Source of the DNA: Iphione sp. A-MEVVRFRX5
Lineage: Eukaryota
NCBI GenBank assembly: GCA_976226885.1
Contig: OZ320322.1
Coordinates: 25,730,001-25,794,000 of the forward strand
Reading direction: 5' to 3'
DNA: 64,000 nt
Shown here: positions 7,379-64,000 of the stretch, piece by piece
Position numbering within the stretch: the first letter of the stretch is position 1
How the letters are laid out: each line of letters starts with the position of its first letter
Program-made: the position numbers and the translations under genes
Notes under the pieces: model-generated
Databases searched by the model: none
Told to the model about the DNA's origin: nothing
Seen by the model: the letters and a program-made list of their open reading frames with translations, nothing else

Positions 7379-8953
7379 AACACTATTTAGCTTTGACCCG
7401 ATTGTGCAGGGTGTGAAAGTACACAGCCTTGACAACCTTAGTAATACCCAGCACTGAAGGCCAATCTGAAAAACAATTGTCCACAGCCATCAATATGAGA
7501 ACACGTGAAGGGTAACACATTACAGCAGTTTATATGCAGAAATTGATCACATGCATGGGATGTTCCTGAATTAGTCCCTGTGCCTCAGCCAAATCAGACA
7601 ACGTTGTCTATAATTGGTTTTGGTAGGAGGTTCTGTCTCGGCACACACTCATCGGGAACTTACTGTTAGGCATTTTCATCATAGAAAAATGAGGCAGTAC
7701 AAATCCGCGCACAGATTTCCGTTAAGTGAAATGACGTGATTACTGTAGACAAATTTATTATATTGAATATATATACACTTGACGTGAATAGGAACTGTCG
7801 CATTCGTACATTAGAAATTGATACAAAAACAAGAGGCAACATAATAATACTATATTTGTTAAGACCAAAGAAATGAGAGATGTGCTATTGTAAATAAATG
7901 ATGATTTTTTTCGAAACTTTAATTCTAGAGGTGAAATCATCATTAATTTTAAACGAACTGGGATACACGAGAGTTTAGATAATCCATTAGATGAAAATGA
8001 GTCATACAGAGAGGTATAGTTTTTCAGTAATTATTTCAGGCATGGAATAACAGTAAACCGTTAGATAGTGATAGGATCTACAGTCCAATCACGGATGGTT
8101 AGCGTCTGCCCGTCGGCCATTGCCCTCACTCAAGACATAACAAACTTCGACCGCGCCACATCAAACCAGTTCACCTTACCACCCATGATGTACATGTATA
8201 TGATCCTAAGGAGTCAGAAGAAAGGGTGCATCCTTATGGGAGAGGGGTGAGAATTGGTGGAGCTTTACTACAGACACCGCCATGGGCAGTACAAGTGACC
8301 AGGAGGGAAAAGCTTATGTAGTACAATGTTGTTTTTTTCATGTTTGGCATTGTTGCATTATGAAAACACCCTGTCGGGTGGAATATTATATATTTGTTAT
8401 TCTAGTCCCTATACTCAGGAAGCCTCGATTATGCACCGACTTAAACAGATAAAAACCATTGAATCTTGGAGCTCTTGAAGCTAAAAACATAAATACCGGT
8501 ACATGACTCCGATAGGATATCGCACCAGGCGCTTATGGCCCTAAATTAGGAACGAGTTATGCATAACCTTTAAAGAGATATTTGTAGCTGAATTAACATC
8601 AAAGCATGTATCACAAAGATCGGGCCCACAACATTCCAATCTTATTTTTCACCTTCAGTATCCTCATGCCACAACACTAATAGCTGGTCAGAAAAGACAC
8701 AGAAAAGAATTTCACTTTACCGCTTAGAGTCATAGTCGCCGATTGAGAGTGAATGATTTTGTCTCCTTATCTTGATTTTTTAAGGGCGTGGTCTTCATAA
8801 CAATTACTGGATTATCTCTTTGAGAACTAAGTAGTCATGAAATCGTTTGCGTGCAGCTACTCCTCAGCATTCATCCATAAATTTCCACAAAAAAAAGGCA
8901 AACTTGGTTCAACTTATCTATCCCATCTCATGGCACTTGACATAAGCGTACTA

Positions 8954-8990
8954 CATTTAAATGGAAGATTCACGACATCTCGGTTCAGTT
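8954..8990 (+). promoter_or_regulatory. Putative core promoter of CK1 (TATA-like element plus Initiator)
   Basis: CATTTAAAT at 8954-8962 and TCAGTT (Inr consensus) at 8985-8990, about 30 bp apart; the Inr ends 43 nt before the ATG of a signal-peptide exon. Confidence 0.5.
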
Positions 8991-9033: not shown

Positions 9034-12000
9034 ATGGCTTTCAAAATAGTACTAACACTTTGCCTTTTGGCAATGGTGCTGACAGGTAAGTATGCTTCTA
9101 TTGATACTATCAACAAATGCTAACTGCTTCAAATTCAAAGTCACACTAAACGGACTATGATTTGTTGTTTTAGAGTCATCTGTGTAACAACAGTGCTAGT
9201 AAGGACCCAACAACAAAGGGCAAAATCCTTTTTCTCGTAAGGCTTGTATATAGAACCATTCCCTTTAGGATAGAGGGAATACGCGTAAACCTACTTCATC
9301 CAAGAATTCCTCTTTTACCATCCAGGAGGGAAGAACAGGGCTAATATTAAAAAGCAGCGAAGGAAACACTAATATCGTGTTTAAATGATTTTTCCGTATT
9401 GATCACAATATCATTAATGCGAAGAGATTAGAGGCTTTGCCCACTTGTTAACACCATTTCACTGTATCCGTTGTTATACCACATGTAACTGTCCCCAAAT
9501 GGTGATTCCTGATGTGAGCGGGACTGAGAGACATTTAAGGAGGAATAGGGGGCGAGTGAGAGAGAAAGAGAGAATAGGTGAAGATGAATAAATAGAACTG
9601 AAAAAAGCACTGGTATCCAAACATATAACACAAATACATTGACATTGAAAGAGGAAACCGCTCGTTCCCATATTCAAACGTGCTTCATATGACTTTGATA
9701 TTTTATACGATTATGACCACACATCACACACGGGCTGATTGCTTCTACGTGTCCCACCTTTTGTAAGAGTGGCAATGTTTCCCAACTTTTAATTATGTGG
9801 CCAAATCTTATGTAAATGTATCTATATGTTTCATACTATGTGATTGCAGCCATTGGTTTCAGCCTTCATCAATAGAACTGACAGAGACTAGAGGAGTAAC
9901 GGGAGTGTGCGGATTAGCTGAACTACATACACCTACATACAATACACTTCAAAACATATATAGCAGTTGTTCATCACTCCTACACTGACTGTCGTCTTAT
10001 GTACCTGAGGCCACATGAATAAGAGATAGTGACATGAGTGGGGAAGTGATACGTTTCTGCTTTCATATCCAATACCTGTCTTTTAATGGCTTCTGGTCCG
10101 ACCTACAGTCACTGGACATTTCTCACTCTCCTGATTTCTTTCTCGCTGTGTGCCTTTTTCACTGCCTCTTGTATTTTAACCACCAGGCTTATCGTATTTT
10201 TCTTATCCTAAAATCTTACCTACACTCTCTGCTGCTTTCTTTCCCTAGCCCTATCATCCTCTCCCTGCAGCTTCATCATCAGCATCCTGCGTCAGTGCAA
10301 TACTCTCCCTTCTATTTACATTCATCCGATTAGTGGTGAAAGCTGAATATCTCATGAGGTTGTTGTGCTATGTCTTGGGCCTCGTGCAAATTGGTTCGAG
10401 CTGCGACCTGTTTTGGGCAGTAAATTGAGAAATCAAGATGGGCATGGCATAACATTCGTGTTCGTGTGGGCTGATTATGACAGGGATCGATAAACTCGCA
10501 GAGAATATCACTTTGTCAGACTGCAGCCGTGCATCTTCTTCCCAAAGAAATGAAACTAAGCCAGCCGCATGACGTTCACTGTTGTGTGAGTAGCTGTCAG
10601 CTACATTTGTGTCGGATCCCTCACTGAAGCAGTAGATGAAAAACATGCATGCTCACAGTTCACCCTGTTTGTATAGTTTCTGAGACTGAGTCTGTGTTTC
10701 CTATAATCAAATATAGAGGTTTCCATGGTATATATATTCACGTCTGCTTCGGTCAAAATAATAATGTGGCTATGCTGTCATTCGCACTGGCAGTAGGAGG
10801 ACTGAATGAAGTAGTTTGACTAGCTTTTTCCACGTATTACCGGAGAGATGGCAGTAGGAACTGTGATATCTTGCAAGTGCGCTTATATTTTAGTAGTGGG
10901 ATGCGTTTGTGAAAATAAGAACTTCAGTGATTGCAAAGTACCTGCTGGGAGCATCATCGAACCGTTGTCCTCTATTGGAGTGATGACCCAGCTTTCCACC
11001 TTGTGTTTGTACTCATAGTTATCCGTCCGAACTTTAACCCTCCCAAACGTCGTGCGTGATGTTTTCCTAATCAATCAATTTTAAAAGCCTTTCCCGGAAC
11101 TTTTCTTTCTACGCCGAATTTTCGCGGCATTGGCTGATGTTTTGAAGCAGTTCAAGTAGTTTTGTTCCAGGCTGTTACTGATGAAAAGTGAACCGACACC
11201 CCTTAGATGTCAAGACACACATGAGAGGTCGATAAATTTCTTTTTGTCACAACTGGTTTGTTGTATTGTTTATCAACGGGATTAGGCCGAGGTGAATTGG
11301 GTCGTGGTGAGTCCTTGAACAGCGATATTGTTCAAGGAGCATTTGGTGATTTTGATGGTACCAATTCAATTTTTCTTTGAAGTGAATCTGCAGAATTTCC
11401 CAATAGAGGACGCGATTTTTACACTTGCCTTTCAGCCTCACCTCACTAAGTAGGGGAATATTTGCTCACTAAAGAAAGATTTAATTACGGTGACGTTTCT
11501 CACCCTTATCCAAAACAATAATTGTGCGAACAGGATAGAATAATGAGCTTTGCTATTTTCAAAAGCATACGGAATTTTCTTCCTTCTGTTAGCATCACCA
11601 GTGTAACGTTCTCGGGGGGGGGGGGTCTTTTAATTGCCACTTACAATTTTGTAGATTCAGTCGAGTGAGGGTCAGGTCGAACATTTCGTCCCCGAATAAT
11701 AACAGGTCAGGTATTATTCCAGATGTTTTTTTGACATTTGGAAAATTGGTGGAAAAGTTCTCTATCTGTTTTATTCTCACCAGCATGATCGCGTTGCTGA
11801 GAAACCATGCAAAGACTCATTCCTTATCCTCAAACATGTGCACGGACTTCTTATTTCTTCTTATCTATCACTTGGTAAAGGCTCGGTTGCAGTTGCTGGA
11901 GGACATGTTGACAGGCAACATATCTGTAGTGTTAGTGTGATGGCAAATTTTGATTCTCCTATGCAAGGTCTCCGTTGCTTGGATGACCGGAAGGGGTATT

Positions 12001-15000
12001 ACCCACTTGCACGTTTATATATTCATATTGTTAGCCCCGAACAAAGTGACATGACTCTTGTTGTACAATTGTGACCGAGGTTTATTCCAAGACAGCACAG
12101 AAAAGAATGGCAAAAATTCCCTCCAGTCCCTTATACAGCCAATGTTAATCTGTCTGGAGAGGCCAAACTCCGGCAAATCCCGGAAACAACAACTCCGCCG
12201 AACTCCGCCTGGAGCATAACTAACTCTGGGCGCAGGCCAAACACTATGTGAGATTGAAGCAAATCGAGGAGAAGCGGGAGCATTCCATGCATATAGAATA
12301 TATCGATATATTTTAGAAATTCATTTCTTTCCGTTCTTTGAGCCTGTACTACCTGTATACTGTATGCCGCCTGCCTCCTAAACAGTTTCAAGACATGTAT
12401 AAATCCATGCGACCTCCAAGTAGCCTGATGAATGATGACATGCATTTTTAGTTAATATGCATATGTGTCTAAATTAGCGAGCAGATTTATCAACAGGTAT
12501 AGATGATATCAGATACATGCTCTCAAGGCACATTATCTACTTACCATTCATCTATCAAATCGGCCATATTCGGTCAACATGTTCTATGCGGCTCTCGTGG
12601 TTCGGATCAACCTGCTGTCGTTTGGGCACAATATGTCTCATTTCCAATCATGTTGTGGGAAAAGTAATCTTCGTTACTGCAAATCAAGCAAACGATATCA
12701 GTAGAATATTCTGTTATTCCACCTACGGACCTTAGCTATCAATTGAATTCGATGAATCGCATGACATTTCTTGCAGATCGCTCCTTAATGGCTCTCCTTA
12801 CTGGATAATACTTATTCCCCTCGGTACTATGCGGACCTGTGGTGTACAACTTGTGAAGCTTTTCCTTGTCGTTCAATAGTGGTGCATTGCCTACAATACC
12901 CTCTCATTACGAGACGTCTAGTTATGAAAGGGTTGTAAGGATATGCAACAGACTTCCTAGTACAATTTATGAAGATAATTTAGTGTTCAGGCCTAAATCG
13001 GCTCTTCGTGCAAATATACAACACATTTGTCATTTCAATTTATAGCAATGCTGAAATGGAGGCAATTATGATATAATCATGTATTAACAAAGTACAAGCG
13101 CCTTTGGCGAGAGAGAGGGAGAGAGAGAGGGGGGGCAGGGAGGGTTGTAAAATAGTACCTTGTACTTTGACCCCTCTTCCAAGTTTACAACCCTCGGTTC
13201 TGCTTGACTGAACAGAGGGGTAGGAATACACCACTCTGTGTAGAAAGTAGGGCCACATATGTCATATGGTTTTTAGTAATTTAAGCATTTTACATACACA
13301 ATAGATGAATAATCATCCTTCTTTTGTCCTACAATATCATTATGCATGAAGTACTTACAAAAATAATGTATTTTGGTATAATCACATCAGAATGACATGG
13401 CAGCCCCCATGGCCGGACTACTTTTAGGCAACATTTTATATAGGTAGTGTAAATAACACATGGAGGATGGTTTCGCCCCACTTCAAATGGAGACATTTGA
13501 GATTCTGCAGGCAAACACAGATACAAAGTATGTCTTTTCTACACACATGACTTAACATTGTTCGCATATATAATATTAAGAAAATCCATGTAGAAACGTT
13601 GGGATATCGATATACAGAAGGAGCACTGAGGCATATAGCCATTGAAGTGAATAACGTTTACTGACCGCAGGTATACCCTGGTATTCACTGGTTTACGACT
13701 GCTGCGAGGCTTGTAAGGGGGTCATTGTTGCCATAGAGACATTTCAACGGATTTTGTTGAAGTAGGGTGTGGTAACGCGAGTACAAAAAAATACACTCAG
13801 ACAAAGGGGTTTTACCGTTCTTTTATGAAGGTTTCGTAGGCATGGCAATCCTTGGAAGTATTATATGGCATGTTATGCTCTAAATCAAAGGACATTAACA
13901 CCACTTAAGAGGAATCCCCAAAACTGCACACAAAGCCTGGTAAACGCCATCATTACCACATTCCAAGGGAGAGAAGCCTTATTTTCAGAGAAGAAGAAAG
14001 TCACGAAAACACAAAATAGTTTGGAAAAGACTACACCACGAAAGACTATGGCCCTTATGGACCTCGGAATAATGATTGGTGTTTTATGCAAACCAAAGAC
14101 GTAGAATTACTGGAGTAAACGTTGTGTGATCGCCACTATCTTCTTCATCAGATTTGTTGTCTACAGAAATATTTATGCAAATATTACAGTAAGTCAGTGG
14201 TTTCCTTTAGACTGTAGATGTCCATGATCCACTAGATTTTGTCTATCGTATTTGTGTTTTCCTCGTATTTTTCTAAATAGTCACACAAATATTATACCAA
14301 GGTACGATTATATCATGGATTCATTGCAGGTATAAACACTCGATCGGTTCTGACACAGATGATGATACGCAATGAAGCCACCTGAAAACCATGAAAGTCA
14401 AGTTAGTCTTTCAACATTTCATCAGCATTCCAAAAACCTCCTCAAATTATATCAATTGACAGATGTATGATAGCATGAAAGTGGTATGTTACTTTCACTG
14501 GTATTTACCGACTAAACCTGTACATTGATGGTTAAATTCTTCGTGTTGTAACCGGTGAATTGCCCTTCTGACGCGCGATTTCTAGTCTCTCTGATGCTAT
14601 CATATGGGAAAGTTAATGTAAGTTTGTTTTTTTATGACAAACATGTTACGGATGATCTGACTGCCATGTAAATTAATGTTAACCTGTTTGGTTTAGAATT
14701 TTTAAGATAATAACATGCATTGATGATGACAGATAAATATAACTAGTATCAAACTTGCATGGGTATTGGTGTCATTCAGTGAAATATACATGGTTGAATC
14801 AATAAAGATCTAGTGAAATACAAACTGGAGCTCGTAACGTCACGTGAAGAAAAACAGTTCTCATGTATTCATATCTTATATATAATAAAGAAATAATCCT
14901 TTTAATATTGCTTTTCATCCACAGTAGTAAATTTTAATGATCAATGAGCCATATGTCAAAAGTCACCCAAAGCAAAGTTTCTTGCATGTTCAACATAATA

Positions 15001-17609
15001 TGCTTGATGCGCTTCCTCACAAGATATGCTTGATTTGCTATCATTTGTTGTTATTTGACACATTGATAAACCCCTACTGCAATTTATCTAGCACTCCTCC
15101 CGCTTTCCAAACGACTGCAGTCTGTCCAGGGTCCAGACTGGATACTTCTTATAATGTGCCTAGACACGTGACGTGGTCATAAGACAGAGTCTAAAAAACC
15201 TAAACACACATTTGAAATAAAATGATGGTGTCTGAAAATAAATATCACTTACGCCCAAACTATAATCCAGATATTACAGGAATGAGACATGACAGTACTA
15301 ATTGGGTAGCAGTTGGCAGGAGCATAGCCAGACATACACCAAAGCTCCGAAGAAGAGACATCAAACTCTCGATTTTAAAGTATTGAAACCTCTTCCCTAG
15401 AGCCCATGGATATACCTGTATTCAAGCTGTATTCTTTTTCCATGCATTATAAATTTGGTATGGAAGATCTCCAGAACATTTTCCTGGTGACATCTTAGCA
15501 TCTATTAATATCACATACATGAGTGACGTCCATATTCTCTTTTATAATATAGTGTTTAAGAGCATTCAATTATTTCGTGATTCTGTTCTCCGTTTGGCCT
15601 GTTTTTGGTTAATAGCCAGTTCTGCATGTGATGAGGTAGGACTGGTAATTGCCACACCACCGGTCTTTGGTCGGATGCTAAAACTGTTGCTGTTACAGAT
15701 AATTTAATCCGACTTATTAGTCCAGTTGACAACAGTTGTATGTTCCTGGTGTCTTTTAGGGATCTCGATCGATTCTGTGGATGCTCTTCTCGCTGGTCTC
15801 TTGCAGCGCGGTAATCGCGGCCAAGTGTTTGCTCTTCCGTTTGTCTTTCGCCCAAACTTCCTACATGGAAGTTGTTTGACTGGTCGTTTCTGCTTTCGCA
15901 ATATATTATGATTTCATATAGGACTACCAAACTTATTTTTCACTTTGGGTCAGAAAAATCTATTGTTTAATGTACACCTTCATCGAAAATCTACCCAAAA
16001 TATGCCCATTCACAAGAAGAACAAATCAATTACAAAAATTATCCTGCAAGGGTATCATTTTGCAATTGGCCTTCTCCCCTTGATGTAATGGTAAATTAAG
16101 GTTTTAGCCCATATCCATGTCAGAAAAATATAGGGATAAATGTCGAGGAGGCAGAAACACTCCACTTCTCTGTTCCCACTCAAACTTATATACTTATATA
16201 TTCAAGGGATGTAGGCAATCAAGTCATTCTGTGGTTGTTGCCTGCAGTGAGAGAACATATTTCACACTCTAGAAACAAGGCAATTGAAAGATGTGATTGA
16301 TCATATTATTGGTTAAGCGAACACTGTGGTGATAAAAATAGATGTATATAATTTTGAGTAGACACCTAAGGGTAGTCCTTCTTCCGGGAAATGAAGGCAA
16401 CGGAGGTCTTGCCTATATGCTGGATGTTCGGAGCTCAGACATTAAAAGATTGTTCTCCAACCTGTGTCTTGTCGTTTTGTTGTAATAGGTACAGATAACA
16501 CTCCAAAAAGTACAGCTGAGTCACTGACTATCTTTACTGTATATAAAACAATGTTATGTTTTACTTCTGTAAAAAAGTAACTTGTTTTTACATAGATATT
16601 TATATGTAACTACCAAGGAGAAAACGTCTTGTTTTGGATAATGCTATTCATTGGTAACTACGAATGAAAAATTATCTTGCTTTTGGCATTGCCATTTATA
16701 GATAAATGTTGGCATTTCAGGTGGCGAAGCCCGTGGAAAGGTATGGCAGGAATAGTATGCAGAAAGAATTGAATGGATTTCAATTTAGTTTACTGACATT
16801 TCATAATTTTGAATGATTAGAATCAAAGACTTTGCTCTTCCTGATTCTAGACATTTGCAATGATATTCCATCTTCCAAGTAACTGAATATATCTGATCTT
16901 TCAGCGTGGATGCCGACCGGCGGCTTATCGTAGCCGTATTTACAAGAATTTCAGAATGCACGACGGTTATGTACAGAGATGTGTTGCCCATGTGTTCAGT
17001 GAGAGATGTACTGGCTTATGCCCTGCCACTGTCATCAAGAAAGCTGCTCATGGTGGTGCCCGTCGAGCATATGGTGTGCCACACGGAAATGGTGTTCAAC
17101 ATGGTTATGGTGTCAGTCGTGGATATGGTACACAGCATAGATATGGTGTCCAACAGGGGTATGGTGTCCAACATGGTTATGGTGTGAGTCAGGGCTATGG
17201 TGCCCAGCGTGGATACGGTAATCAATATGGGTATGGTTTCCAGCGTGGATATGGTGCCAGTCATGGCTATGGTGTCCAATATGGATATGGCTTCGGTCGT
17301 GGATATGGTGCCAGTTATGGACATAATGTCCGGGGTGGATATGGTAACTATGGTAATTATGGTTATGGTCGATCTGGGACCCATGGAACTTATGGTGGTT
17401 ATGGCCAACACAGATCTGCTGCCCATGGTCCAAAGAGCTCTGGCGCCGGAAAGGGCAAACTCAAGACCTACTACCAGGCCAATTGCTGTAGAGCTGCTGC
17501 TGTGTCCCCTAGACAAGTATGGGTCACATATCAATGTGGCAAATACGGATTCAAACGAGTTCTTTTGACCCAGAACCTTCCAAAGGAATGTTATTGTACG
17601 TCCTGGTAA
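9034..17609 (+). CDS. CK1: secreted cystine-knot protein with a Gly/Tyr-rich repeat insert (258 aa, 3 exons)
   Basis: Exons 9034-9085 (MAFKIVLTLCLLAMVLT, G|gtaagt, phase 1), 16721-16740 (20-nt micro-exon, catttcag|...AAG|gtatgg, adds GGEARGK) and 16905-17609 (tttcag|, phase 0). Cys pattern C-x22-C-x8-CTGLC-x154-CC-x15-C-x17-CYC-TSW*. AATAAA at 18026. The join across the 7.6-kb first intron is inferred from phase compatibility and from the parallel structure of CK2. Confidence 0.8.
11595..12900 (-). pseudogene. Possible tubulin-tyrosine-ligase-like (ATP-grasp) pseudogene, antisense within CK1 intron 1
   Basis: Minus-strand fragments in the expected order: LLNDKEKLHKL, then KYID...PLLLD...FGLRPELV (cf. 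QxYIxxPLLxxxxKFDLRxYVLV), then LLFGDEMFDLTLTRLNLQN (cf. ELxGxDxxxDxxLxPWLLEVN). Interrupted by stops and frameshifts. Confidence 0.3.
17067..17318 (+). repeat. Coding 18-bp tandem repeat, 14 GYG-x-x-x hexapeptides
   Basis: AYGVPH GNGVQH GYGVSR GYGTQH RYGVQQ GYGVQH GYGVSQ GYGAQR GYGNQY GYGFQR GYGASH GYGVQY GYGFGR GYGASY. Confidence 0.95.
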
Positions 17610-18853: not shown

Positions 18854-21800
18854 CTATATTTGAATATTTTCCTCAACATACAATTGAATAACATCCATCA
18901 AATCATAATTTGTTGGTATAAATGTCTCATCAGTCATTGCTACTCCTGTAAAGGGCATTTTGTGTATTAAATTTTCTAACTTCGTCCATACAAAACTTTC
19001 AGCTAGTAGAGGAATTTCAATATGGTAAGCCTGTAATTTTTCATTGAAACATATGGTCTTGTACATTTGTAACTCTAAAAAAATATCATTTCCTTTACTA
19101 CAAGTGTAAATACCTTGCACTAGACCAAAGCAAGGATGGAACTCTGTGGTTTCAGTGATCACATATGACTGACCTTTAATATATTTCATCCCATGAACCT
19201 CAGCAGACTTACTTTTGTAGACACTAATATTTTCCTCAGCAATATTGCAAAATATTGCCATTTTGGTCTTTGCATTTAGTTCATCATTACCTGTAAGTTT
19301 AACAGCTTTTCCAAATTCTCCTTCACCAGAAAACAATGAATGTTTACCAGGATTTTCACCTTTATCAATGCATTCTGCAATTTGGGCCTCTGTTGCTACT
19401 GATTTAGCCAGGTTTATAAAGTTTTGTACTCTTGCAATACGTTTATAGTGAACGTGTTTACCTTCAAAACGCATACACCAATGTCTAATTGCTGGACCAA
19501 GTTTCTTAATATTAGAAGGAATATGCAGTAGATAGTGATGCTTAGGCAGAATACGGCAGTCTGGAAATAATTTCTTGAATGATAACAAATGATTTTTTAT
19601 CATGTCTTTAAGATTTGATAAAGTTGCAAAGCTTAAAACTGGTGCCATCACAATCTTAACTATCTCAACCAATTCTATGAAAAAAGAATAGTAATTAGTG
19701 TTCACATCTACAAGTTGAGACAAAATAAAAGGTAATATTTTCAATAATACAATAGTTTGACTGGATGATTGTTTAATCTTATTATCATCTGTGTGAAGTG
19801 TACTCATTTGAAGCAAGGTTGGTTTTGAGCTAACATTATTATATCCATAGTTAAAGTTAGCAAGCTGATCATTCAACTGTTGTAAAGTGAAGATTTTGCT
19901 GTCTAATATGTAGAATTTCAATAACAGCTTCAGTTCATATTGTGCTATGCCTTCAAAGATCACATGCATAATATCTTGTGGCAAGCAAATAGAAATATCA
20001 AAGTAAGGAAATTCTAATAGTATGCTCTGTCTAGTAATGCCATACAAAGTACTCAGATAGTCTCTCATATATTTAGAATTTGCTCGTTCTATCTCTACAC
20101 ACCTGCTTTGATAATCCTCTACAGTAAGGCACACAAAATCATTTTCATTAAATATCGTTTGCATATCATCATCAGTACATTGACATTGACGACATTTTTG
20201 ATATGCTCCACCTACACCTTCTTTGAAACCACCAATTAAGTTGCTTGCTGGAGTATCACCAATCACTGAATGGAGTGTAGCATAAAACAATATTTCATGG
20301 CCATTGATTTCAAAGGTGAAGCCATTTCCTAAGATAATCATCTCTTCTAGAAAAGGTTTCATTATTTTATTGATGCCATACTTATCAACAATATCTCTAT
20401 CAGCACAAGCAAGTAAACGAATGGCAGATAACTTGGATCGATATTTCAGGTTGATGTTTCCAATAGTGAAATAAAACATAGACAGTTTAGAGGTTTTGCT
20501 CCCAAGGGGATTGCATATTTCAAGATCATCAAAATACAATATTACTGCAAGGGAGTTTTTCTTCTTCAAGTTAGGATGTGTTTTGAAAAAATCTCCATCA
20601 CAAATATCAACAACATAACCAGGTGGTGCATACAGAGGTTGTGATGATAACATTTCTAATATTTTGTCATTCAACATCCACTGTTGGAGACTTTCTTGTA
20701 TGGGAATATAATAAAATTTATCTTGTACTACAGTAGGTTCTAGACAACCTGATTTACGCTTTCTCGTATATGTATGCCCTAGGACTATTTCCCTAGGCTT
20801 AATAAATGGAAAATTAGCTTGTAAATTCTTTTTCTGTTGGTATGCAGAATTCATGTTTGACATAGGATTCGTGTATTGTTCTATAGCATGATCTATGATA
20901 CTTTCCATCTCTGTTGGATTCGCTAGTCCAGTACTATGAACCTGCTCCATGACATGCTGCTTCAGTTGTCCAATGCTTTGGGAAATCAGAGCACTGCAGC
21001 CATCTACAATTTCATCAACTGCTGCCTATAACATAATAATTAAACACAAAACTGTACTATATGAATACATCAATATGTTAGGAAAAACTACATATCAGAA
21101 GTTTGTCCCCATTTGATAGCTCTTTCATGACAACACACACAAACTTAACTACATTAATATCAGACAGCTTACAGATTTGTATTTAGATATAAAGATGACA
21201 TTGGAGGAACATTTGCCATTTGACACTTCTTAGGACTAGATATATCTGAATTGATATAACAAATGGCTGTGAAATATAGATTTTCAGAAAAAACATCTGT
21301 CACACTACCTGTGTCAAACTGTGTTTTGTCTTTATACCCATCACAAACTGCACTGCTTTTCGTGTTATATTTTCTGGTTTATGACCTGCACTGCTTCCAG
21401 GATCCTGAAACAAGCATACATAACACAGGTATGGGTAGTGTATTGGTAATTATGACCTTAAATTGTTTTGTTACTAATAATTTGTTATACTTTACCAGTA
21501 AAACTATTTTATATATATATGTATTGGTATTATGTATTATATATATTTTCTATTTACCTCTGAGATCTAGGTAGTCTTAATATAGCCTTGAAATTATTTA
21601 TTAATACACCTGTCAGAAATAAATGACTTTATTGTTTAAATGGTTATTTTACATGACTATACATCAATAACTTACATTAAAAACATCAGTGTCATCTTCC
21701 AGAGTAGCTGGGTTACCCTCTGATGCTTCACTTTCATCAACCTCCCTTTGCATGTGGGTAGATTCATGATTTATTGCATTTCTGGGACTGTAGTTATACT

Positions 21801-34670: not shown

Positions 34671-37073
34671 ATGTCATTGCGTTGCATCCTGCTGCTGTGT
34701 CTGGTCGCAGCATTTGTGGCCTGTGATGCTTGTGTCCTCTCTCTGTCTCCTTCTCTCTCTCATGCAAATATAATGGAAATTTAGCCAAATCAGTATGCCT
34801 TCTTCCGTAAATCTCTTGGAAATTAAGCGACGTCTCCCTCATATCCATACTTTATTAGAGCGTATTAGGAGCTGACTTATTGGTGTGCATCTATTATAGA
34901 TGTCTAGTGGACACTAGTGGACACATAAATGCTTCATTCCTTGATCAGTCGGGGTTGAAAAGGTTTGCTAACAGAGCTTGGCTCAGGCCAGCATGGACAG
35001 CGTAGTGATCACCTCTTTTACACTCTGCAGTGAGCAATTCTTTGTAAGAATATGTCTCCACATTACTGACCGAAGTTGGCTACGGACTGATTGAACCGAA
35101 TATATCGACCAGTTGAGCAGACACATTGGCTGGATTATTCAACGCTAACTTTGAGTTTTTCTGCTAGCTAACTTTAATATAGACAATAGACCACTGAGCC
35201 AAACTTGGCCTTAATACTGAGGTACCTTCCCATATGAGTTGCCTGCAACCTACCTGCTTCAAACATGGTTCTGTTTTATTTTGTATTAATAATTAATTAT
35301 TATTAGATAGAAACAATACCAAAGTTATGCCAGAGCTGGGTCAAAAGGATGTTGGTATCAATTCAAAATTACTATATCAAATAACATAAATTGAATTGTG
35401 GATCAACAAAACTATTTGGGGATACTTTTTGATATTAAGGTAAAGTTAGACTTTAAACATTCTAATTTATTTAGAAAATTAATATAGACAATTTGTCTTC
35501 AATTAGATTGCCTCGTGTAATCTTACTAAACTATATAAAACTCATATATAAACTCATGTTGATTATTCAGCTGTGTTTTTAACTTACAATAAAAAGATTA
35601 AGCTTTACTATATTCAAAGGTTACAAAAAGGTGCTTGGTCCTTGACAGTTGCTGACAATAGTTCAACAATTAAGGAGAGATTATATGTTATGTATGGTGT
35701 CATAAGCACTTATCAAAAAGGAGCTTATTTTTCACATGGGACGCAATCTACTATCATTATGTATTTTTCACACTAACCCTGATAACATTACCAAACAGTT
35801 TTTAGATTAGCATTCATCATTCGAAGACCTTAATCAGAAAGGTTAAAAGATTTATCTCCATCTGTATCTGTAAGACTATTATATCTGTTAGTACTGCATT
35901 TGGCATGTAAGCAGAGTATAATATTTTTGCACAAATGATATTTGACCATTTGTATATTTTACAATCATTACTATATGTTTGAATATTGTTATACACTATC
36001 TACTTCTGAAAAAGATCTTTCTCTTGATGATCAATTAGGAAAAGATTTTCTTATCTTATGTGAGGGTGAAAACCTCTCTAAATACCATAATCAATTTGAC
36101 ATTCCTCAAACTTCTGTTATGGGGTCTTTGTAAGCCAAGAGAAACAGAAACGGCTTGAAATATGTTTTAATTTAACAAAATACTAACGACAAGGATAATG
36201 ATCCTGCAGTAGGCAGCATAATTGACACATCACATGCGTGACAGGATGACCTGTTGTACAGTCATGATATCTGTCAATCAAAGTGTTTCATAGCCAATGA
36301 CACTATACTATTTTGTCACATGACTTGTGTAACCAATCTCTGCAGATGACATTCAAGAGACACTGTCGCTCACTTGTGATTGTAGTATAATTATAACTGT
36401 CATATGTCATTATGTGGTTATGTTAATGTAAAGACATTATATCCAATGAGAACATGTTGAGACATCTATATTTATTTTCAAAGTATATGAGAAAGTGAAG
36501 TACACTGATACTATGACTAGAAACCTTTTTTAATATTGCTCGTGATGATAACAAAAGTATGACTCACTTTATGTTGGCTGGGCATGGTTACATGACAGGA
36601 TGGTGATGTGTCAATTGTCCAGTTGACTTTGTTCATCTTTAAGAAAGCCTCCCATTTTTTGTTCTAGCCCAAGCAACAGCAGTGCAACATTATGGTATTT
36701 AACGCCAGTATATCAAAAACATATCAATATAATATGCTATATCAACAGCAGTCTGCCATGGTGTTGTTTTCACCGCTGCTAGATATAAAAGTGTCCGAAA
36801 TTAGCTGCGCAACCATATGCCCGTGCCCATTTCATGACCCTATGAATGGGACTGTCCTGTAGTTACCGATTCCTGCCTGCGGGGAAGGCAGGAGCTGGCC
36901 CTTTACATTCTGGCGATACTACACCAACCAAGAACCAGATTAAAAAATCCGGTGTTACTATAGACTGCAACATCAGGACAGAAACTATTGGCATGTCAAC
37001 CAAGCCACTAGTCATTGTAAGGCAATACAGCCACGGAATTCATAACCGTTTTTGTGAAAGGCAAACTGGATGA
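34671..37073 (+). pseudogene. Decayed third paralog of the CK1/CK2 family
   Basis: Signal-peptide-like MSLRCILLLCLVAAFVACDA at 34671-34730, with TATAAAA at 34445. Phase-0 acceptor cccattttttgttctag| at 36667 is followed by PKQQQCNIMVFN-(1-nt frameshift)-RQYIKNISI*YAISTAVCHGVVF, aligning with CK2 NFCKLVPYDRMVTKKIEIEGHTKVCKALVVY. Then TGCTAG--ATA..TGTCCGAAA (cf. CK2 TGCCAGGGATACTGTCCAAAC), and near the end FCE.Q-W (cf. FCACEDW). The C-terminal half aligns only loosely. Confidence 0.55.
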
Positions 37074-60734: not shown

Positions 60735-63402
60735 ATGTCTAAGAAGATATTCCTGTGGTTATTGTGTGTAACCATCCTTGGATATGTATCGGGAAAGGAT
60801 CTTTCATTTAAAGGTATGGAACACGACCATGATTCCCATGATTTACAAAGTGTAAGGCATTCTTCAACATCGCCATTTAGTAAATGGCCTGCTCATTTGA
60901 GTGCAAGCCTGATATTAAGTAGAACGGAGGAGGTCTAATTCAGACACTTCATTAGTAGATAGCGGACCCATTTAACACAACTTAGGTTTTTATGCTTTAC
61001 AAATATTGATATATACTTTATTGACATTATTTGAAATAAGTCTATCCTTTAATTCTTTTCAAATTTATATGATGAGAAACATTTCAGTAACATGATGGAA
61101 TGTTAGTCTATTTCTTTTATATTCATTCCCCATTGGTATGAGAACAGTGTATTTATTAAGAACTGGTCGGAAACACACTCTTCGCTACATGTCAGATAGT
61201 GATTCTAAGATAAGTACGACTATCATCTTTAGAAACGATGATATTTCAGCAGCACTATCAAAATTTGCCATCTAGTAAACGAATGATTATTAGCTGTGAA
61301 ATAGTATGGCATACATTGCCAGCATAATTACAAAACTGTTTTCTCCATTTGCATGATAATAAAATGTTAAAGTGCTAAGTCAAACTTTCAACAAAGGATT
61401 GGAAGTAGTTTGTCCATCTAATTTTGATAATGGTTATGGAAATCACATGAGATAACCCCCCCCCCCCCAAAAAAAATAGTTGTGTTTCTGGTAACCCACT
61501 CCTACCTAGTAAAACCTCACCTTACCTAAAAATATTTTGGGCCCAAAGAGTTTCTAAGGCTGAATTTCCTTAGATACATGTTTTCATGACATATTTTTTG
61601 TACATTCAGTAGAAAAACAACAGAATTCATGGAAATTCACCAAAAAACTGTAAAACTCATACAGATTAGTCAAAATTTCATATTGTCTTTATTATTATTC
61701 AAAACCAGAGGAAGAAACTGGAAAAAAGTCTAAAAAAAATGTAACCCCCATCCCTACATAGGTTTTTGGCTGGTCATTACCAGAAACACATTTCTGTGGC
61801 CTAAGGCATATTTTAGCAGCCCGATAAGGAGTTATTTCATTCCTGTAGTATGAGAATGATTATGAAATTTGCAAACAGCGGAGCACGCTTTTTTTCCTTA
61901 CTTTGAAGAGTTCCCTATATAAGAAAAGCTTCATCGTTGGATTTACAAGTGTTCAGGAAAACTTTGTCAATATGATTGGAATGTATCATGCCCATTTGGT
62001 ATTAGTATAATTTTAACATATACATTTGATCGGATATATTCTGACAGCCTTACTGGAAGATAGTTTCCCATCTGGCATAGGAATAATTATGATAAATATT
62101 ACGAATACTTATTAACTACTACAAATGCTTTGCCGTTTCGGTTAAAAGCTAGTTTACTGATTTTGAAAGATGTATAAGGAATTGCAAATAATAGATGGCC
62201 AAGACGCTCCTTTTAAACAGACTCATGGGCTATCCTTCGTGTTCCTTCACGTAGCTCAATTTATCCTCTGTATGTTTTACCAGTTATCATGTTCTTTCAT
62301 GCTTTTTCAATGTGGTATTGTCTGCTCGCCGGGTCTCTCCTATATGGGACGGCAGTATTCTTTCCTTTTATTCAACGTGTTTTTAAGAAAATACTGAAAC
62401 GGAAAAAAGAAATAAATATTCCAAATTATTGCAAAACATTAAATTGCTCTGTCATTTTGTCATCAGTGCCATGTCAAAGTCCATCGTACATATTTGATTT
62501 GAATGCAGTCATAGTAAAGAGCTTTATGCATGTTACCGATATTAATCAAATTTTGTCACGTATCATATAGCTTCAAAATAGGTTCAATTATGTTTCATTG
62601 TTTTTCAGAGTTCTATTATCAAAAATTCCGGGTAAGTGCGATCTTTTCATGAATAAATTCACCCCAGTTGAGATTCATTTTGAAATGTTCGCCTATAAAA
62701 TTTCTTCTTTTTGGCAATAAAGTGGTTGATCCGAATGCAGCTGTACCGCCGGTTTGCACTAAGCGATTAAAGTATCTAGTATGAAATGTCAGATAGATGG
62801 AGTAACAGCTACGGAAGGTGGGTGTGATGCAGCATTCCAAACAAAGACCATTTCTACATCAAGAATGCGTCGTGCACGTCATCGAATTATCCAAAATGGG
62901 TGTGTTTAGCCTTCATACAGCTCCCTCTAAACCTTTCTCTTTCTGTTTCTGCTTTCTTTATTCGATGAACTCGCAGAATTTCTGCAAGTTGGTTCCATAC
63001 GATAGGATGGTGACGAAGAAGATAGAAATTGAGGGACACACGAAGGTCTGCAAAGCTCTTGTCGTCTACAAGAAATGCCAGGGATACTGTCCAAACTTCA
63101 CCATGTACCGTTACGTACGGAAGTTCATTTACGACCCTTATTACTACAAGACACGCGCCTACGGCAACGTGCTAGACGTGTTCAACCGGCACGCGTTCCA
63201 TTACGGACCTCGTCATAAGACCAAGTACTTCTCGGGGCGATTCGTCTGGTCCAGGGTGCCCTACGAACGTGCACGCTGCTGCAAGCCGTTCCGTATCGGC
63301 AAGCTGGTGCAGCTGGTCAAATTCGACTGTGGGAAGTTTGGCTACAAGAAGGTCGAGCTCGGTATCGAGCAGCCCAAATTCTGTGCCTGCGAGGACTGGT
63401 AA
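60735..63402 (+). CDS. CK2: secreted cystine-knot protein with a Tyr/Lys/Arg-rich insert (175 aa, 3 exons)
   Basis: Exons 60735-60813 (MSKKIFLWLLCVTILGYVSGKDLSFK, G|gtatgg, phase 1), 62609-62631 (23-nt micro-exon, tttttcag|...CGG|gtaagt, adds EFYYQKFR) and 62977-63402 (ctcgcag|, phase 0). Cys pattern C-x21-C-x8-CQGYC-x62-CC-x15-C-x17-CAC-EDW*. Confidence 0.88.
61481..61790. mobile_element. MITE-like element in CK2 intron 1 (310 bp)
   Basis: TGTGTTTCTGGTAA ... TTACCAGAAACACA: perfect 14-bp inverted termini. Confidence 0.6.
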
Positions 63403-64000
63403 AAGATTGCTACCATTTATATTTTAACATCTTCCACTTGTATAATTCACCGATTGCTTTTGCGGCTGTAACTCCTCCACCGCCAGACATCACAAACATG
63501 TGCTTTTGGCGTAGACATCCTGCAGCTTCTCTACACGTTTCCGATGGTAACAGACCCATCTTGGAGCTTTTGTAACATAGGGATTAGTTGGTTGGAAAAT
63601 ACTCGATCCTCCCTTTGATTCCAATGCTAGACTACTTTGTTCGTCTATATTCGAATTTCACACACTTTTTGGGTGATGCACTGTTGTTGGCTAGACTCAA
63701 ATATCACTCAAAAAAGCAATTGGTGAATATATTCATTTTATAAGGAAATACTCGACTCAATTAGCCTGGCAATGTCAGAAGATATAGTTTATAATACCAA
63801 TTCAAATTCCAAAGAATTTTTTTAGGCATAGTGGATATGTATCCCACTGCATAGCTCATGTCTTTTTCATAAAAATGAATTGTTTTAGTGTAGGGATAGG
63901 CAGAAACAATCATCATGCAGAGGTCATATACTCCCTGCTCCGTTGACATAATACCTATGCTATAGTTTTAGGGAGGGGCGATTAGTGATCCATACGTGCA

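Follow-up and report, generated by a model that had tools for sequence, protein, structure and literature searches.

The glycine- and tyrosine-rich (Gly/Tyr) repeats of animal glues, silks, beaks and shells are described as linear chains, and the locus studied here raises the question of whether such a repeat can instead be carried as a closed loop of a folded protein, and what a protein built in this way would be for. The locus lies in a stretch of 64,000 nucleotides from Iphione sp. A-MEVVRFRX5 (hereafter the window; positions 25,730,001-25,794,000 of contig OZ320322.1, C22 in our numbering, in a genome of 1.18 Gb and 89 contigs). The element in question is the terminal exon of a gene that we call CK1, in which a long hexapeptide repeat is flanked on both sides by cysteine-rich sequence. 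We propose that this repeat is closed into a loop by a predicted cystine knot, we find that loops of this kind are shared by a large gene family of the same genome, and we weigh a structural or adhesive role against its alternatives.

The repeat and the predicted knot that closes it

The initial annotation had pointed to 154 residues without Asp or Glu between a CTGLC and a CC motif, and this description proved exact (17022-17483): CTGLC corresponds to residues 35-39 and CC to residues 194-195 of the CK1 terminal exon, and the intervening segment is composed of G45, Y24, A12, Q12, H10, R10, V9, S8, K6 and N6, with zero D and zero E, which is the composition of Gly/Tyr biomaterial repeats. Also present were the 14 in-phase 18-bp units that had been noted for their His, Arg, Gln or Tyr (they span VPHGNG to ASYGHN, and residue 3 is always H, R, Q or Y), followed by the GNY/GGY stretch and the Lys-rich linker. 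When the edge units ARRAYG and VRGGYG are included, the run comprises 16 in-phase hexapeptides, 12 of which are exact xxxGYG. Tandem Repeats Finder recovered the array with periods of 18, 36, 54 and 72 (scores 126-235). The 18-bp units are 44-94% identical to one another in DNA and the array is therefore old and diverged, not a fresh microsatellite. The absence of acidic residues exceeds chance: when the loop DNA was shuffled by mononucleotide 20,000 times, none of the products was free of GAN codons, 124 of the 154 loop codons lie one nucleotide step from D or E, and a neutral star-divergence simulation over 48 variable codons yielded a mean of 3 acidic residues (P(zero) = 0.04).

Two further sequences resemble the CK1 unit. 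A word search with the CK1 exon, loop included, returned only P0001 (a JGI protein of 248 aa with a Pfam WW domain, E = 3e-3), whose QQGYG/AQHGYG/VQHGYG hexapeptides are almost identical to it; this match is compositional and not homologous, and the likeness looks like convergent low-complexity sequence. In the genome itself, L015 (G000:C19:66777495-66777791) is a minisatellite of 18-bp units, translated as T-H-D-G-Y-G in one frame, that has no surrounding knot and shares 66-74% DNA identity with the CK1 repeat; it may point to the origin of the loop repeats, or it may be unrelated to them.

The fold was approached exon by exon, the terminal-exon product serving as query in all searches and structure predictions. 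With an alignment of 22 paralogues as input, AlphaFold modelled the CK1 knot as two beta-hairpin fingers at high confidence (predicted local distance difference test, pLDDT, 90-97), and residues 57-183 at pLDDT < 50. The 'silk-like' beta structure suggested by the initial annotation was thus not borne out, no confident structure being predicted for the loop. The short-loop paralogue L003 was modelled with the same core as CK1. When the trimmed CK1 model was compared by VIA-align with a set of 48,161 chains, the top 30 were all cystine-knot growth factors (Z from 7.2 down to 3.4), and they included C. elegans alpha2 (GPA2), VEGF, PDGF, Norrin, VWF-CTCK, gremlin, sclerostin, FSH and GDNF. Foldseek aligned a single hairpin of the full CK1 model (42 columns) because of the long disordered loop; with the L003 model, which served as the query covering both knot halves, the top 50 were all cystine-knot growth factors, with Norrin first (E = 0.02). 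In the ESM Atlas, the search by shape placed the partner of bursicon first and then GPA2 and GPH-beta (template modelling score 0.52-0.58), and the search by features gave CTCK, DAN and GPH-beta clusters at 0.80-0.84, which is below the level that counts and is taken as a lead only.

The cysteine pattern agrees with these models. The knot cysteines of CK1 are C3, C35-T-G-L-C39, C194/C195 and C229-Y-C231, which provides the six knot cysteines of the superfamily with their C-x-G-x-C and C-x-C ring, next to two hairpin fingers and a variable heel. Across 22 paralogues there is no variation in the nine Cys, in Gly37 or in the terminal Trp, and the Cys remain invariant when sequences from another species are added. 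No single score is strong, but because the structural matches are consistent and the CxGxC/CxC pattern is present, it is a safe prediction that the ends of the CK1 terminal exon form a cystine-knot growth-factor domain. The modelled shape comes closest to the partner of bursicon, GPA2, Norrin, VWF-CTCK and the DAN family. The repeat is strongly predicted to be loop 2 of the knot, the 'heel' between Cys III and Cys IV, and the disulfide-closed loop that had been proposed from the sequence gains support in that both ends of the repeat are pinned by the predicted knot, with CxGxC and CxC invariant. The probable bonding is three knot bonds and a finger-to-finger bond (C26-C211), which leaves one Cys of the CC pair free for a possible bond between two molecules.

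We did not file the family under Cys_knot, Hormone_6 or DAN, because no Pfam match rose above threshold. CK1 had no Pfam match even at E up to 10, and no hormone, DAN or CTCK model of Pfam scored above threshold for CK1 or for the seven paralogues scanned with it. The paralogue L039 matched Cys_knot below threshold (E = 0.29, 11.9 bits vs a cutoff of 24), and a match of L025 to Keratin_2_head (E = 0.11) was taken as compositional. A sequence profile search of the PDB gave only inhibin beta A (E = 0.31) and a C. elegans Cys_knot protein (E = 1.6).

CK1 and its gene family

We infer that CK1 is a three-exon gene, made of a signal-peptide exon, a microexon and a large terminal exon, with a secreted basic product (Table 1); the terminal-exon product has a mass of 25.5 kDa and an isoelectric point (pI) of 9.9. 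Its candidate exon 1 shares 78-82% DNA identity with the first exon of paralogues on contig C19, and a MAFK-type signal exon with a phase-1 donor was found in every paralogue inspected, all of which have three exons. A direct splice from exon 1 to the terminal exon was rejected for a frame clash (phase 1 vs phase 0), which is resolved because the 20-nt microexon converts phase 1 to phase 0. The length of the microexon is 2 mod 3 in CK1 (20 nt), L006 (29 nt) and L002 (14 nt), and in 22 of the 22 complete exons compared, CK1 included, exactly two codons separate the acceptor AG from Cys1. Intron 1 differs strongly in size, with 7.6 kb in CK1 vs roughly 110-160 nt in L006 and L002. Within the CK1 intron lies an element of ~360 bp (13094-13452) that resembles a short interspersed nuclear element (SINE) and has more than 4,000 first-look candidates genome-wide; the 40 copies scored are 95-99% identical and the element was therefore recently active.

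Upstream of exon 1, paralogues L002, L003, L004, L006, L017 and L023 carry a (T)GACATCA(T/G)C motif, then 8-10 nt and a TATTTA-type box, the whole about 60-100 nt before the ATG, which suggests a common regulation of the family. In CK1 the first half of the motif (TGACAT) and the box are kept and the second half has diverged. The promoter region of CK2, a second family gene of the window, is without the first element of the motif, and no microexon of CK2 was located.

Table 1. Features of CK1 and CK2, in positions of the window
Feature	Position	Strand	Details
CK1, putative core promoter (TGACAT half-motif, then TTTAAA TATA-like box)	8938..8962	+	78 nt before ATG
CK1, candidate exon 1: signal peptide MAFKIVLTLCLLAMVLT and first base of next codon	9034..9085	+	phase-1 donor G/GTAAGT
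CK1, predicted intron 1, 7.6 kb	9086..16720	+	contains SINE-like repeat 13094-13452
CK1, predicted microexon, 20 nt	16721..16740	+	reads GGEARGK with split codon completed; acceptor tttcag/, donor AAG/gtatgg; phase 1 to 0
CK1, terminal exon, 234 codons and TAA	16905..17609	+	single open frame
N-terminal knot half, predicted finger 1 (strands 4-17, 23-36)	16905..17021	+	Cys3, Cys26, Cys35-x-Gly-x-Cys39; pLDDT 90-97
Predicted loop 2, 'heel' position	17022..17483	+	154 aa, no D/E, G 29%, Y 16%, pI about 10
14 in-phase 18-bp units, x-x-[HRQY]-G-Y-G type	17076..17327	+	translation, Tandem Repeats Finder
Extended in-phase run, 16 units	17058..17345	+	one edge unit added on each side
Irregular GNY/GGY/GYG stretch	17328..17405	+	translation
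His- and Lys-rich linker back into knot	17406..17483	+	translation
C-terminal knot half, predicted finger 2 (strands 193-210, 216-233)	17484..17606	+	Cys194-Cys195, Cys211, Cys229-x-Cys231, Trp234; pLDDT 87-97
CK2, candidate signal-peptide exon	60735..60813	+	phase-1 donor
CK2, terminal exon, 141 aa and stop	62977..63402	+	same nine Cys; family profile E = 4e-40

A profile search of the genome revealed at least 55 distinct terminal-exon loci, 54 of 55 without an internal stop. They form arrays on C22 (25.68-25.79 Mb, with five genes including CK1 and CK2, and 50.6-50.8 Mb), on C19 (26.6-27.0 Mb) and on C26 (48.16-48.22 Mb and 40.32-40.45 Mb). The last of these (G000:C26:40322461-40452767) is a tandem array with a period of 3.37 kb and at least 16 copies of one family gene; seven copies that were compared (L006-L012) encode 152-aa terminal-exon products that are identical or one residue apart, which suggests an amplification for dosage.

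Across the family, loop 2 measures 18-154 residues, the longest being that of CK1, and is built on GYG, GFG/SFGN or GLG-GYG motifs, or on (W-S/N-D/N-K)n in L037; with few exceptions it is basic, rich in Gly and aromatic residues, and free of acidic ones. In the 19 paralogues with Gly/aromatic loops, the loops contained 37% G, 22% Y+F+W, 14% K+R+H and only 0.7% D+E (11/1604), vs 6.0% D+E in the knot halves of the same proteins. What defines the family is its Gly/aromatic loop without acidic residues, of which CK1 has the most extreme form, and selection clearly keeps the composition of the loop. The knot halves are under purifying selection: the ratio of nonsynonymous to synonymous divergence (dN/dS) was 0.06-0.27 in 13 of the 14 paralogue pairs compared (the exception, L027 vs L028, stood at 0.56). 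The initial annotation had called a loop of this kind unusual, which holds for the full-text literature, where we found no cystine knot described with a low-complexity module for its loop 2, but within this genome it is the rule, and it is not peculiar to CK1 because at least 55 genes carry such loops.

Individual members depart from the common design in several ways. CK1 itself is tentatively placed as sister to the short-loop L003, and the loop of CK2 is 62 aa long, rich in Tyr, Phe, Arg and Lys, and non-repetitive. In L037 (G000:C26:48178607-48179239, +), loop 2 consists of about 30 W-S/N-D/N-K tetrapeptides instead of Gly/Tyr sequence, an example of an unrelated aromatic repeat taking the place of the usual loop. 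The gene has C-S-S at the position of the final CxC and may be a broken or deviant copy. In two divergent, single-copy genes, L038 (G000:C2:107879437-107879613, -) and L039 (G000:C22:28249480-28249767, +), the loop is non-repetitive and 18 aa long, and an additional Cys produces CxCC. Both have the look of ordinary small cystine-knot ligands, which may be what the family was like in its ancestral form.

Other parts of the window were inspected for related sequence. A third paralogue, considered at 36668-37073 (+), is not supported by the family profile (E = 2), and no knot pattern was seen in any frame of 36668-36859. Downstream of CK2, 21 codons at 63803-63865 (+) show 61.9% identity to the N-terminal knot part of CK1 (..KNF..GYV..C.AHVF) and reach a family profile E of only 0.48; they may be the relic of a further copy. 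No tyrosinase or peroxidase was found among the long open reading frames of the 64-kb window, where the sole match was a weak one of a 698-aa frame at 18857-20950 (-) to a Plavaka-type transposase (E = 0.0017, below the Pfam cutoff).

Outside this genome, relatives are few. An exhaustive HMMER search of 1.84 billion protein representatives, with a profile (A2) that largely excludes the loops, gave four matches at E <= 0.001, of which three (P0002, P0003 and P0004; E = 3e-9 to 5e-5) were taken as real and the fourth (P0005, 1570 aa), a weak match in ten short stretches, was disregarded. The three relatives all lie on long contigs of ENA assembly ERZ25767047 (G+C content 37.6%), whose host is a different organism from the source of the window; P0002 and P0004 are without a near-identical copy in the Iphione genome. 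At both relative loci checked (P0004 and P0002) one or two codons separate the start of the exon from Cys1, and P0004 and P0003 are each preceded by a candidate signal exon of MALK type. The loops of these relatives are unlike that of CK1: P0004 has repeats of Y/K/H/G/D type, the loop of P0002 is rich in N/L/R and that of P0003 in K/D/E/N. In P0004 (L042:10001-10621), loop 2 consists of GDAHYKGDYKGYHK-like Tyr/Lys/His/Gly/Asp repeats that recall mussel-type adhesive decapeptides, and CxGxC reads CQDNC. The same HMMER search found no family match in annotated proteomes, and word-based protein searches with a nine-paralogue alignment and with the short-loop L038 returned nothing. Public assemblies contained no exact record of the 217-aa open reading frame.

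Possible functions of the closed loop

The most likely reading, to which we give a little less than an even chance, is that the family product is a structural or adhesive extracellular matrix protein. As in Gly/Tyr-rich adhesive and structural repeat proteins, the predicted CK1 product is secreted (it has a signal exon), basic and made of Gly/Tyr tandem repeats. Such a protein would be exported as a building block of a cement, a tube lining, a bristle or cuticle matrix, or a capsule. In its loop, Tyr together with Arg, His and Lys would act as 'stickers' and Gly as 'spacers', and the loops would condense through cation-pi and pi-pi contacts; the 10 His of the loop may make condensation start as the pH rises at secretion, and the material could then be cured through Tyr chemistry, to 3,4-dihydroxyphenylalanine (DOPA) or dityrosine. 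The knot would be a stable node that resists stretching and keeps the two ends of the loop in one place, and the invariant ninth Cys may link two molecules by a disulfide, which would make a two-loop cross-linker. Precedents are found in the literature: basic Gly/Tyr-rich repeat proteins make up the cement of sabellariid annelids, where Tyr becomes DOPA (PMC12621633), condensation of spider silk proteins is driven by Arg-Tyr cation-pi contacts (PMC12772222), black widow dragline silk contains predicted cystine-slipknot proteins (PMC7397007), and models point to a strong stretch resistance of cystine-knot proteins (PMC3592873). A bolder version, which we put forward tentatively and would not bet on, is that the family constitutes an undescribed class of material proteins, in which a cystine-knot scaffold serves as the stable 'clasp', perhaps a dimerising one, of an aromatic loop that can be exchanged, and in which gene amplification and loop swapping would provide tunable, phase-separating, Tyr-curable closed-loop building blocks.

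Several points weigh against a structural or adhesive role. The splicing and transcription of CK1 are predictions from its sequence, and constraint on this copy may be relaxed: the terminal branch of CK1 measures 1.99 vs a median of 0.45, the knot dN between CK1 and L003 is 0.37 vs 0.13-0.16 for other L003 pairs, its 7.6-kb intron 1 carries transposon insertions and its promoter motif is half-degenerate. Neither the profile search nor the whole-exon word search returned a homologue among the cement, shell or beak proteins described so far, the likeness to known material proteins being compositional only. The prediction of an L003 homodimer scored 0.02, which counts neither for nor against a dimer. 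Lastly, the basic Gly/aromatic composition and the fast-evolving tandem arrays fit defence peptides equally well.

This last point leads to a host-defence effector, in which the knot would resist proteases and carry the cationic Gly/aromatic loop, and the loop would act on microbes or fungi either in the intact protein or once cleaved off. Type II crustins join a Gly-rich region to a Cys-rich domain. The CK1 loop has a pI of about 10 with zero acidic residues, and fast-diversifying tandem arrays with hypervariable loops are a pattern typical of immune gene families. The NLP/caenacin peptides of C. elegans, which are encoded by 111 genes and induced by infection, are basic and have a high content of Gly and aromatic residues with YGGYG motifs (PMC6780910). 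We nevertheless consider such a role unlikely. The loops of 70-154 residues far exceed the length of NLP/caenacin peptides, there is no conserved dibasic or furin site beside the CK1 loop (which ends ...YYQAN before CC), the at least 16 near-identical copies on C26 point to dosage and not to diversification, and the Asp/Glu-rich loops of P0003 and P0004 in the other species are a poor fit to purely cationic killing. It is less probable still that the proteins signal through a receptor, as hormones or antagonists of bursicon, GPA2 or DAN type with loop 2 as a spacer or a propeptide-like insert, and we regard this as very improbable. The nearest folds are indeed hormones, growth factors or their antagonists, and the short-loop L038 and L039 resemble ordinary small cystine-knot ligands, L039 with its sub-threshold Cys_knot match. 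At least 55 genes, among them arrays of near-identical copies, are, however, unlike the organisation of hormone genes, the loop reaches up to twice the size of the knot with a composition that is clearly maintained by selection, and the Pfam models of hormone, DAN and CTCK domains stayed below threshold.

A different objection concerns CK1 and leaves the family untouched: CK1 could be a decaying or silent copy of a functional family, its extra-long repeat the product of unconstrained slippage. The long branch and raised dN, the swollen intron 1 with its young SINE-like insert and the half-lost promoter motif would all fit, and the repeat is stop-poor in several frames, so that the open frame of CK1 alone proves little. 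Yet CK1 has retained each of the nine Cys as well as Gly37, the G-K-x-G motif, Pro226 and Trp234, its three exons have intact splice sites, 234 codons are read without frameshift or stop, the knot dN/dS between CK1 and L003 is 0.25, and the loop holds no acidic residue even though most of its codons are a single step away from one. Altogether we find a decaying CK1 rather unlikely, somewhat more so than a defence role of the family.

Returning to the structural or adhesive reading, what would set the family apart is that the loop is closed, and closed by a small fold whose stability is among the highest known, in more than 50 genes that are matched by no database family or annotated proteome. 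If the reading is true, the family would be a natural experiment on what chain topology and a covalent node do to condensation and curing, would offer ready-made design modules for recombinant adhesives, and would add a further case of a signalling-type fold recruited to a structural role. If instead the products act in defence, the idea of Gly/aromatic peptides, so far described from nematodes only, would be extended to another phylum on a new scaffold.

Comparison with known systems

With bursicon, GPA2, GPB5, Norrin, VWF-CTCK and the DAN family, the predicted CK1 proteins share secretion, an eight-residue knot ring (CxGxC and CxC), two long hairpin fingers with an additional pair of Cys that would bond one to the other, a CC doublet ahead of finger 2, and a Cys count that is odd, as it is in those members that dimerise covalently. 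They differ from bursicon, GPA2, DAN and CTCK proteins in that they have no threshold match in Pfam and, in the PDB profile search, inhibin beta A as their best and weak match, and in that the short heel of those proteins is replaced by a loop 2 of 18-154 low-complexity residues in at least 55 tandem genes. A cystine-knot fold that makes a gel-forming material rather than a signal is known from horseshoe-crab coagulogen, which polymerises after a helical peptide has been excised and has no low-complexity loop. Cys and Gly/Tyr repeats also come together in the high glycine-tyrosine keratin-associated proteins, which cross-link a fibre matrix but are intracellular and unknotted.

Among extracellular materials, the sabellariid cement proteins Pc-1 and Pc-2 and their Sa homologues are likewise secreted and basic with Gly/Tyr peptide repeats, whereas they are described as linear repeats in a paper without mention of a cystine knot (PMC12621633); they were not among the matches of the exhaustive HMMER profile search, and the likeness is compositional only. 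The black widow proteins CRP1, CRP2 and CRP4 are, as CK1 may be, small disulfide-knotted components (predicted cystine slipknots) of a structural biomaterial (PMC7397007), but they have no Gly/Tyr loop module, belong to another phylum and showed no sequence relation to the family. The NLP/caenacin peptides of C. elegans share the basic charge, the YGGYG-type repeats and the many clustered genes, and differ in being short linear peptides without a folded domain; according to a review, NLPs are not known outside nematodes (PMC6780910). Set beside these systems, the fold of the CK1 family is known and so are its Gly/Tyr repeats; their combination, kept across a large gene family, was found described neither in Pfam, the PDB sequences and the 1.84 billion protein representatives nor in the full-text literature searched.

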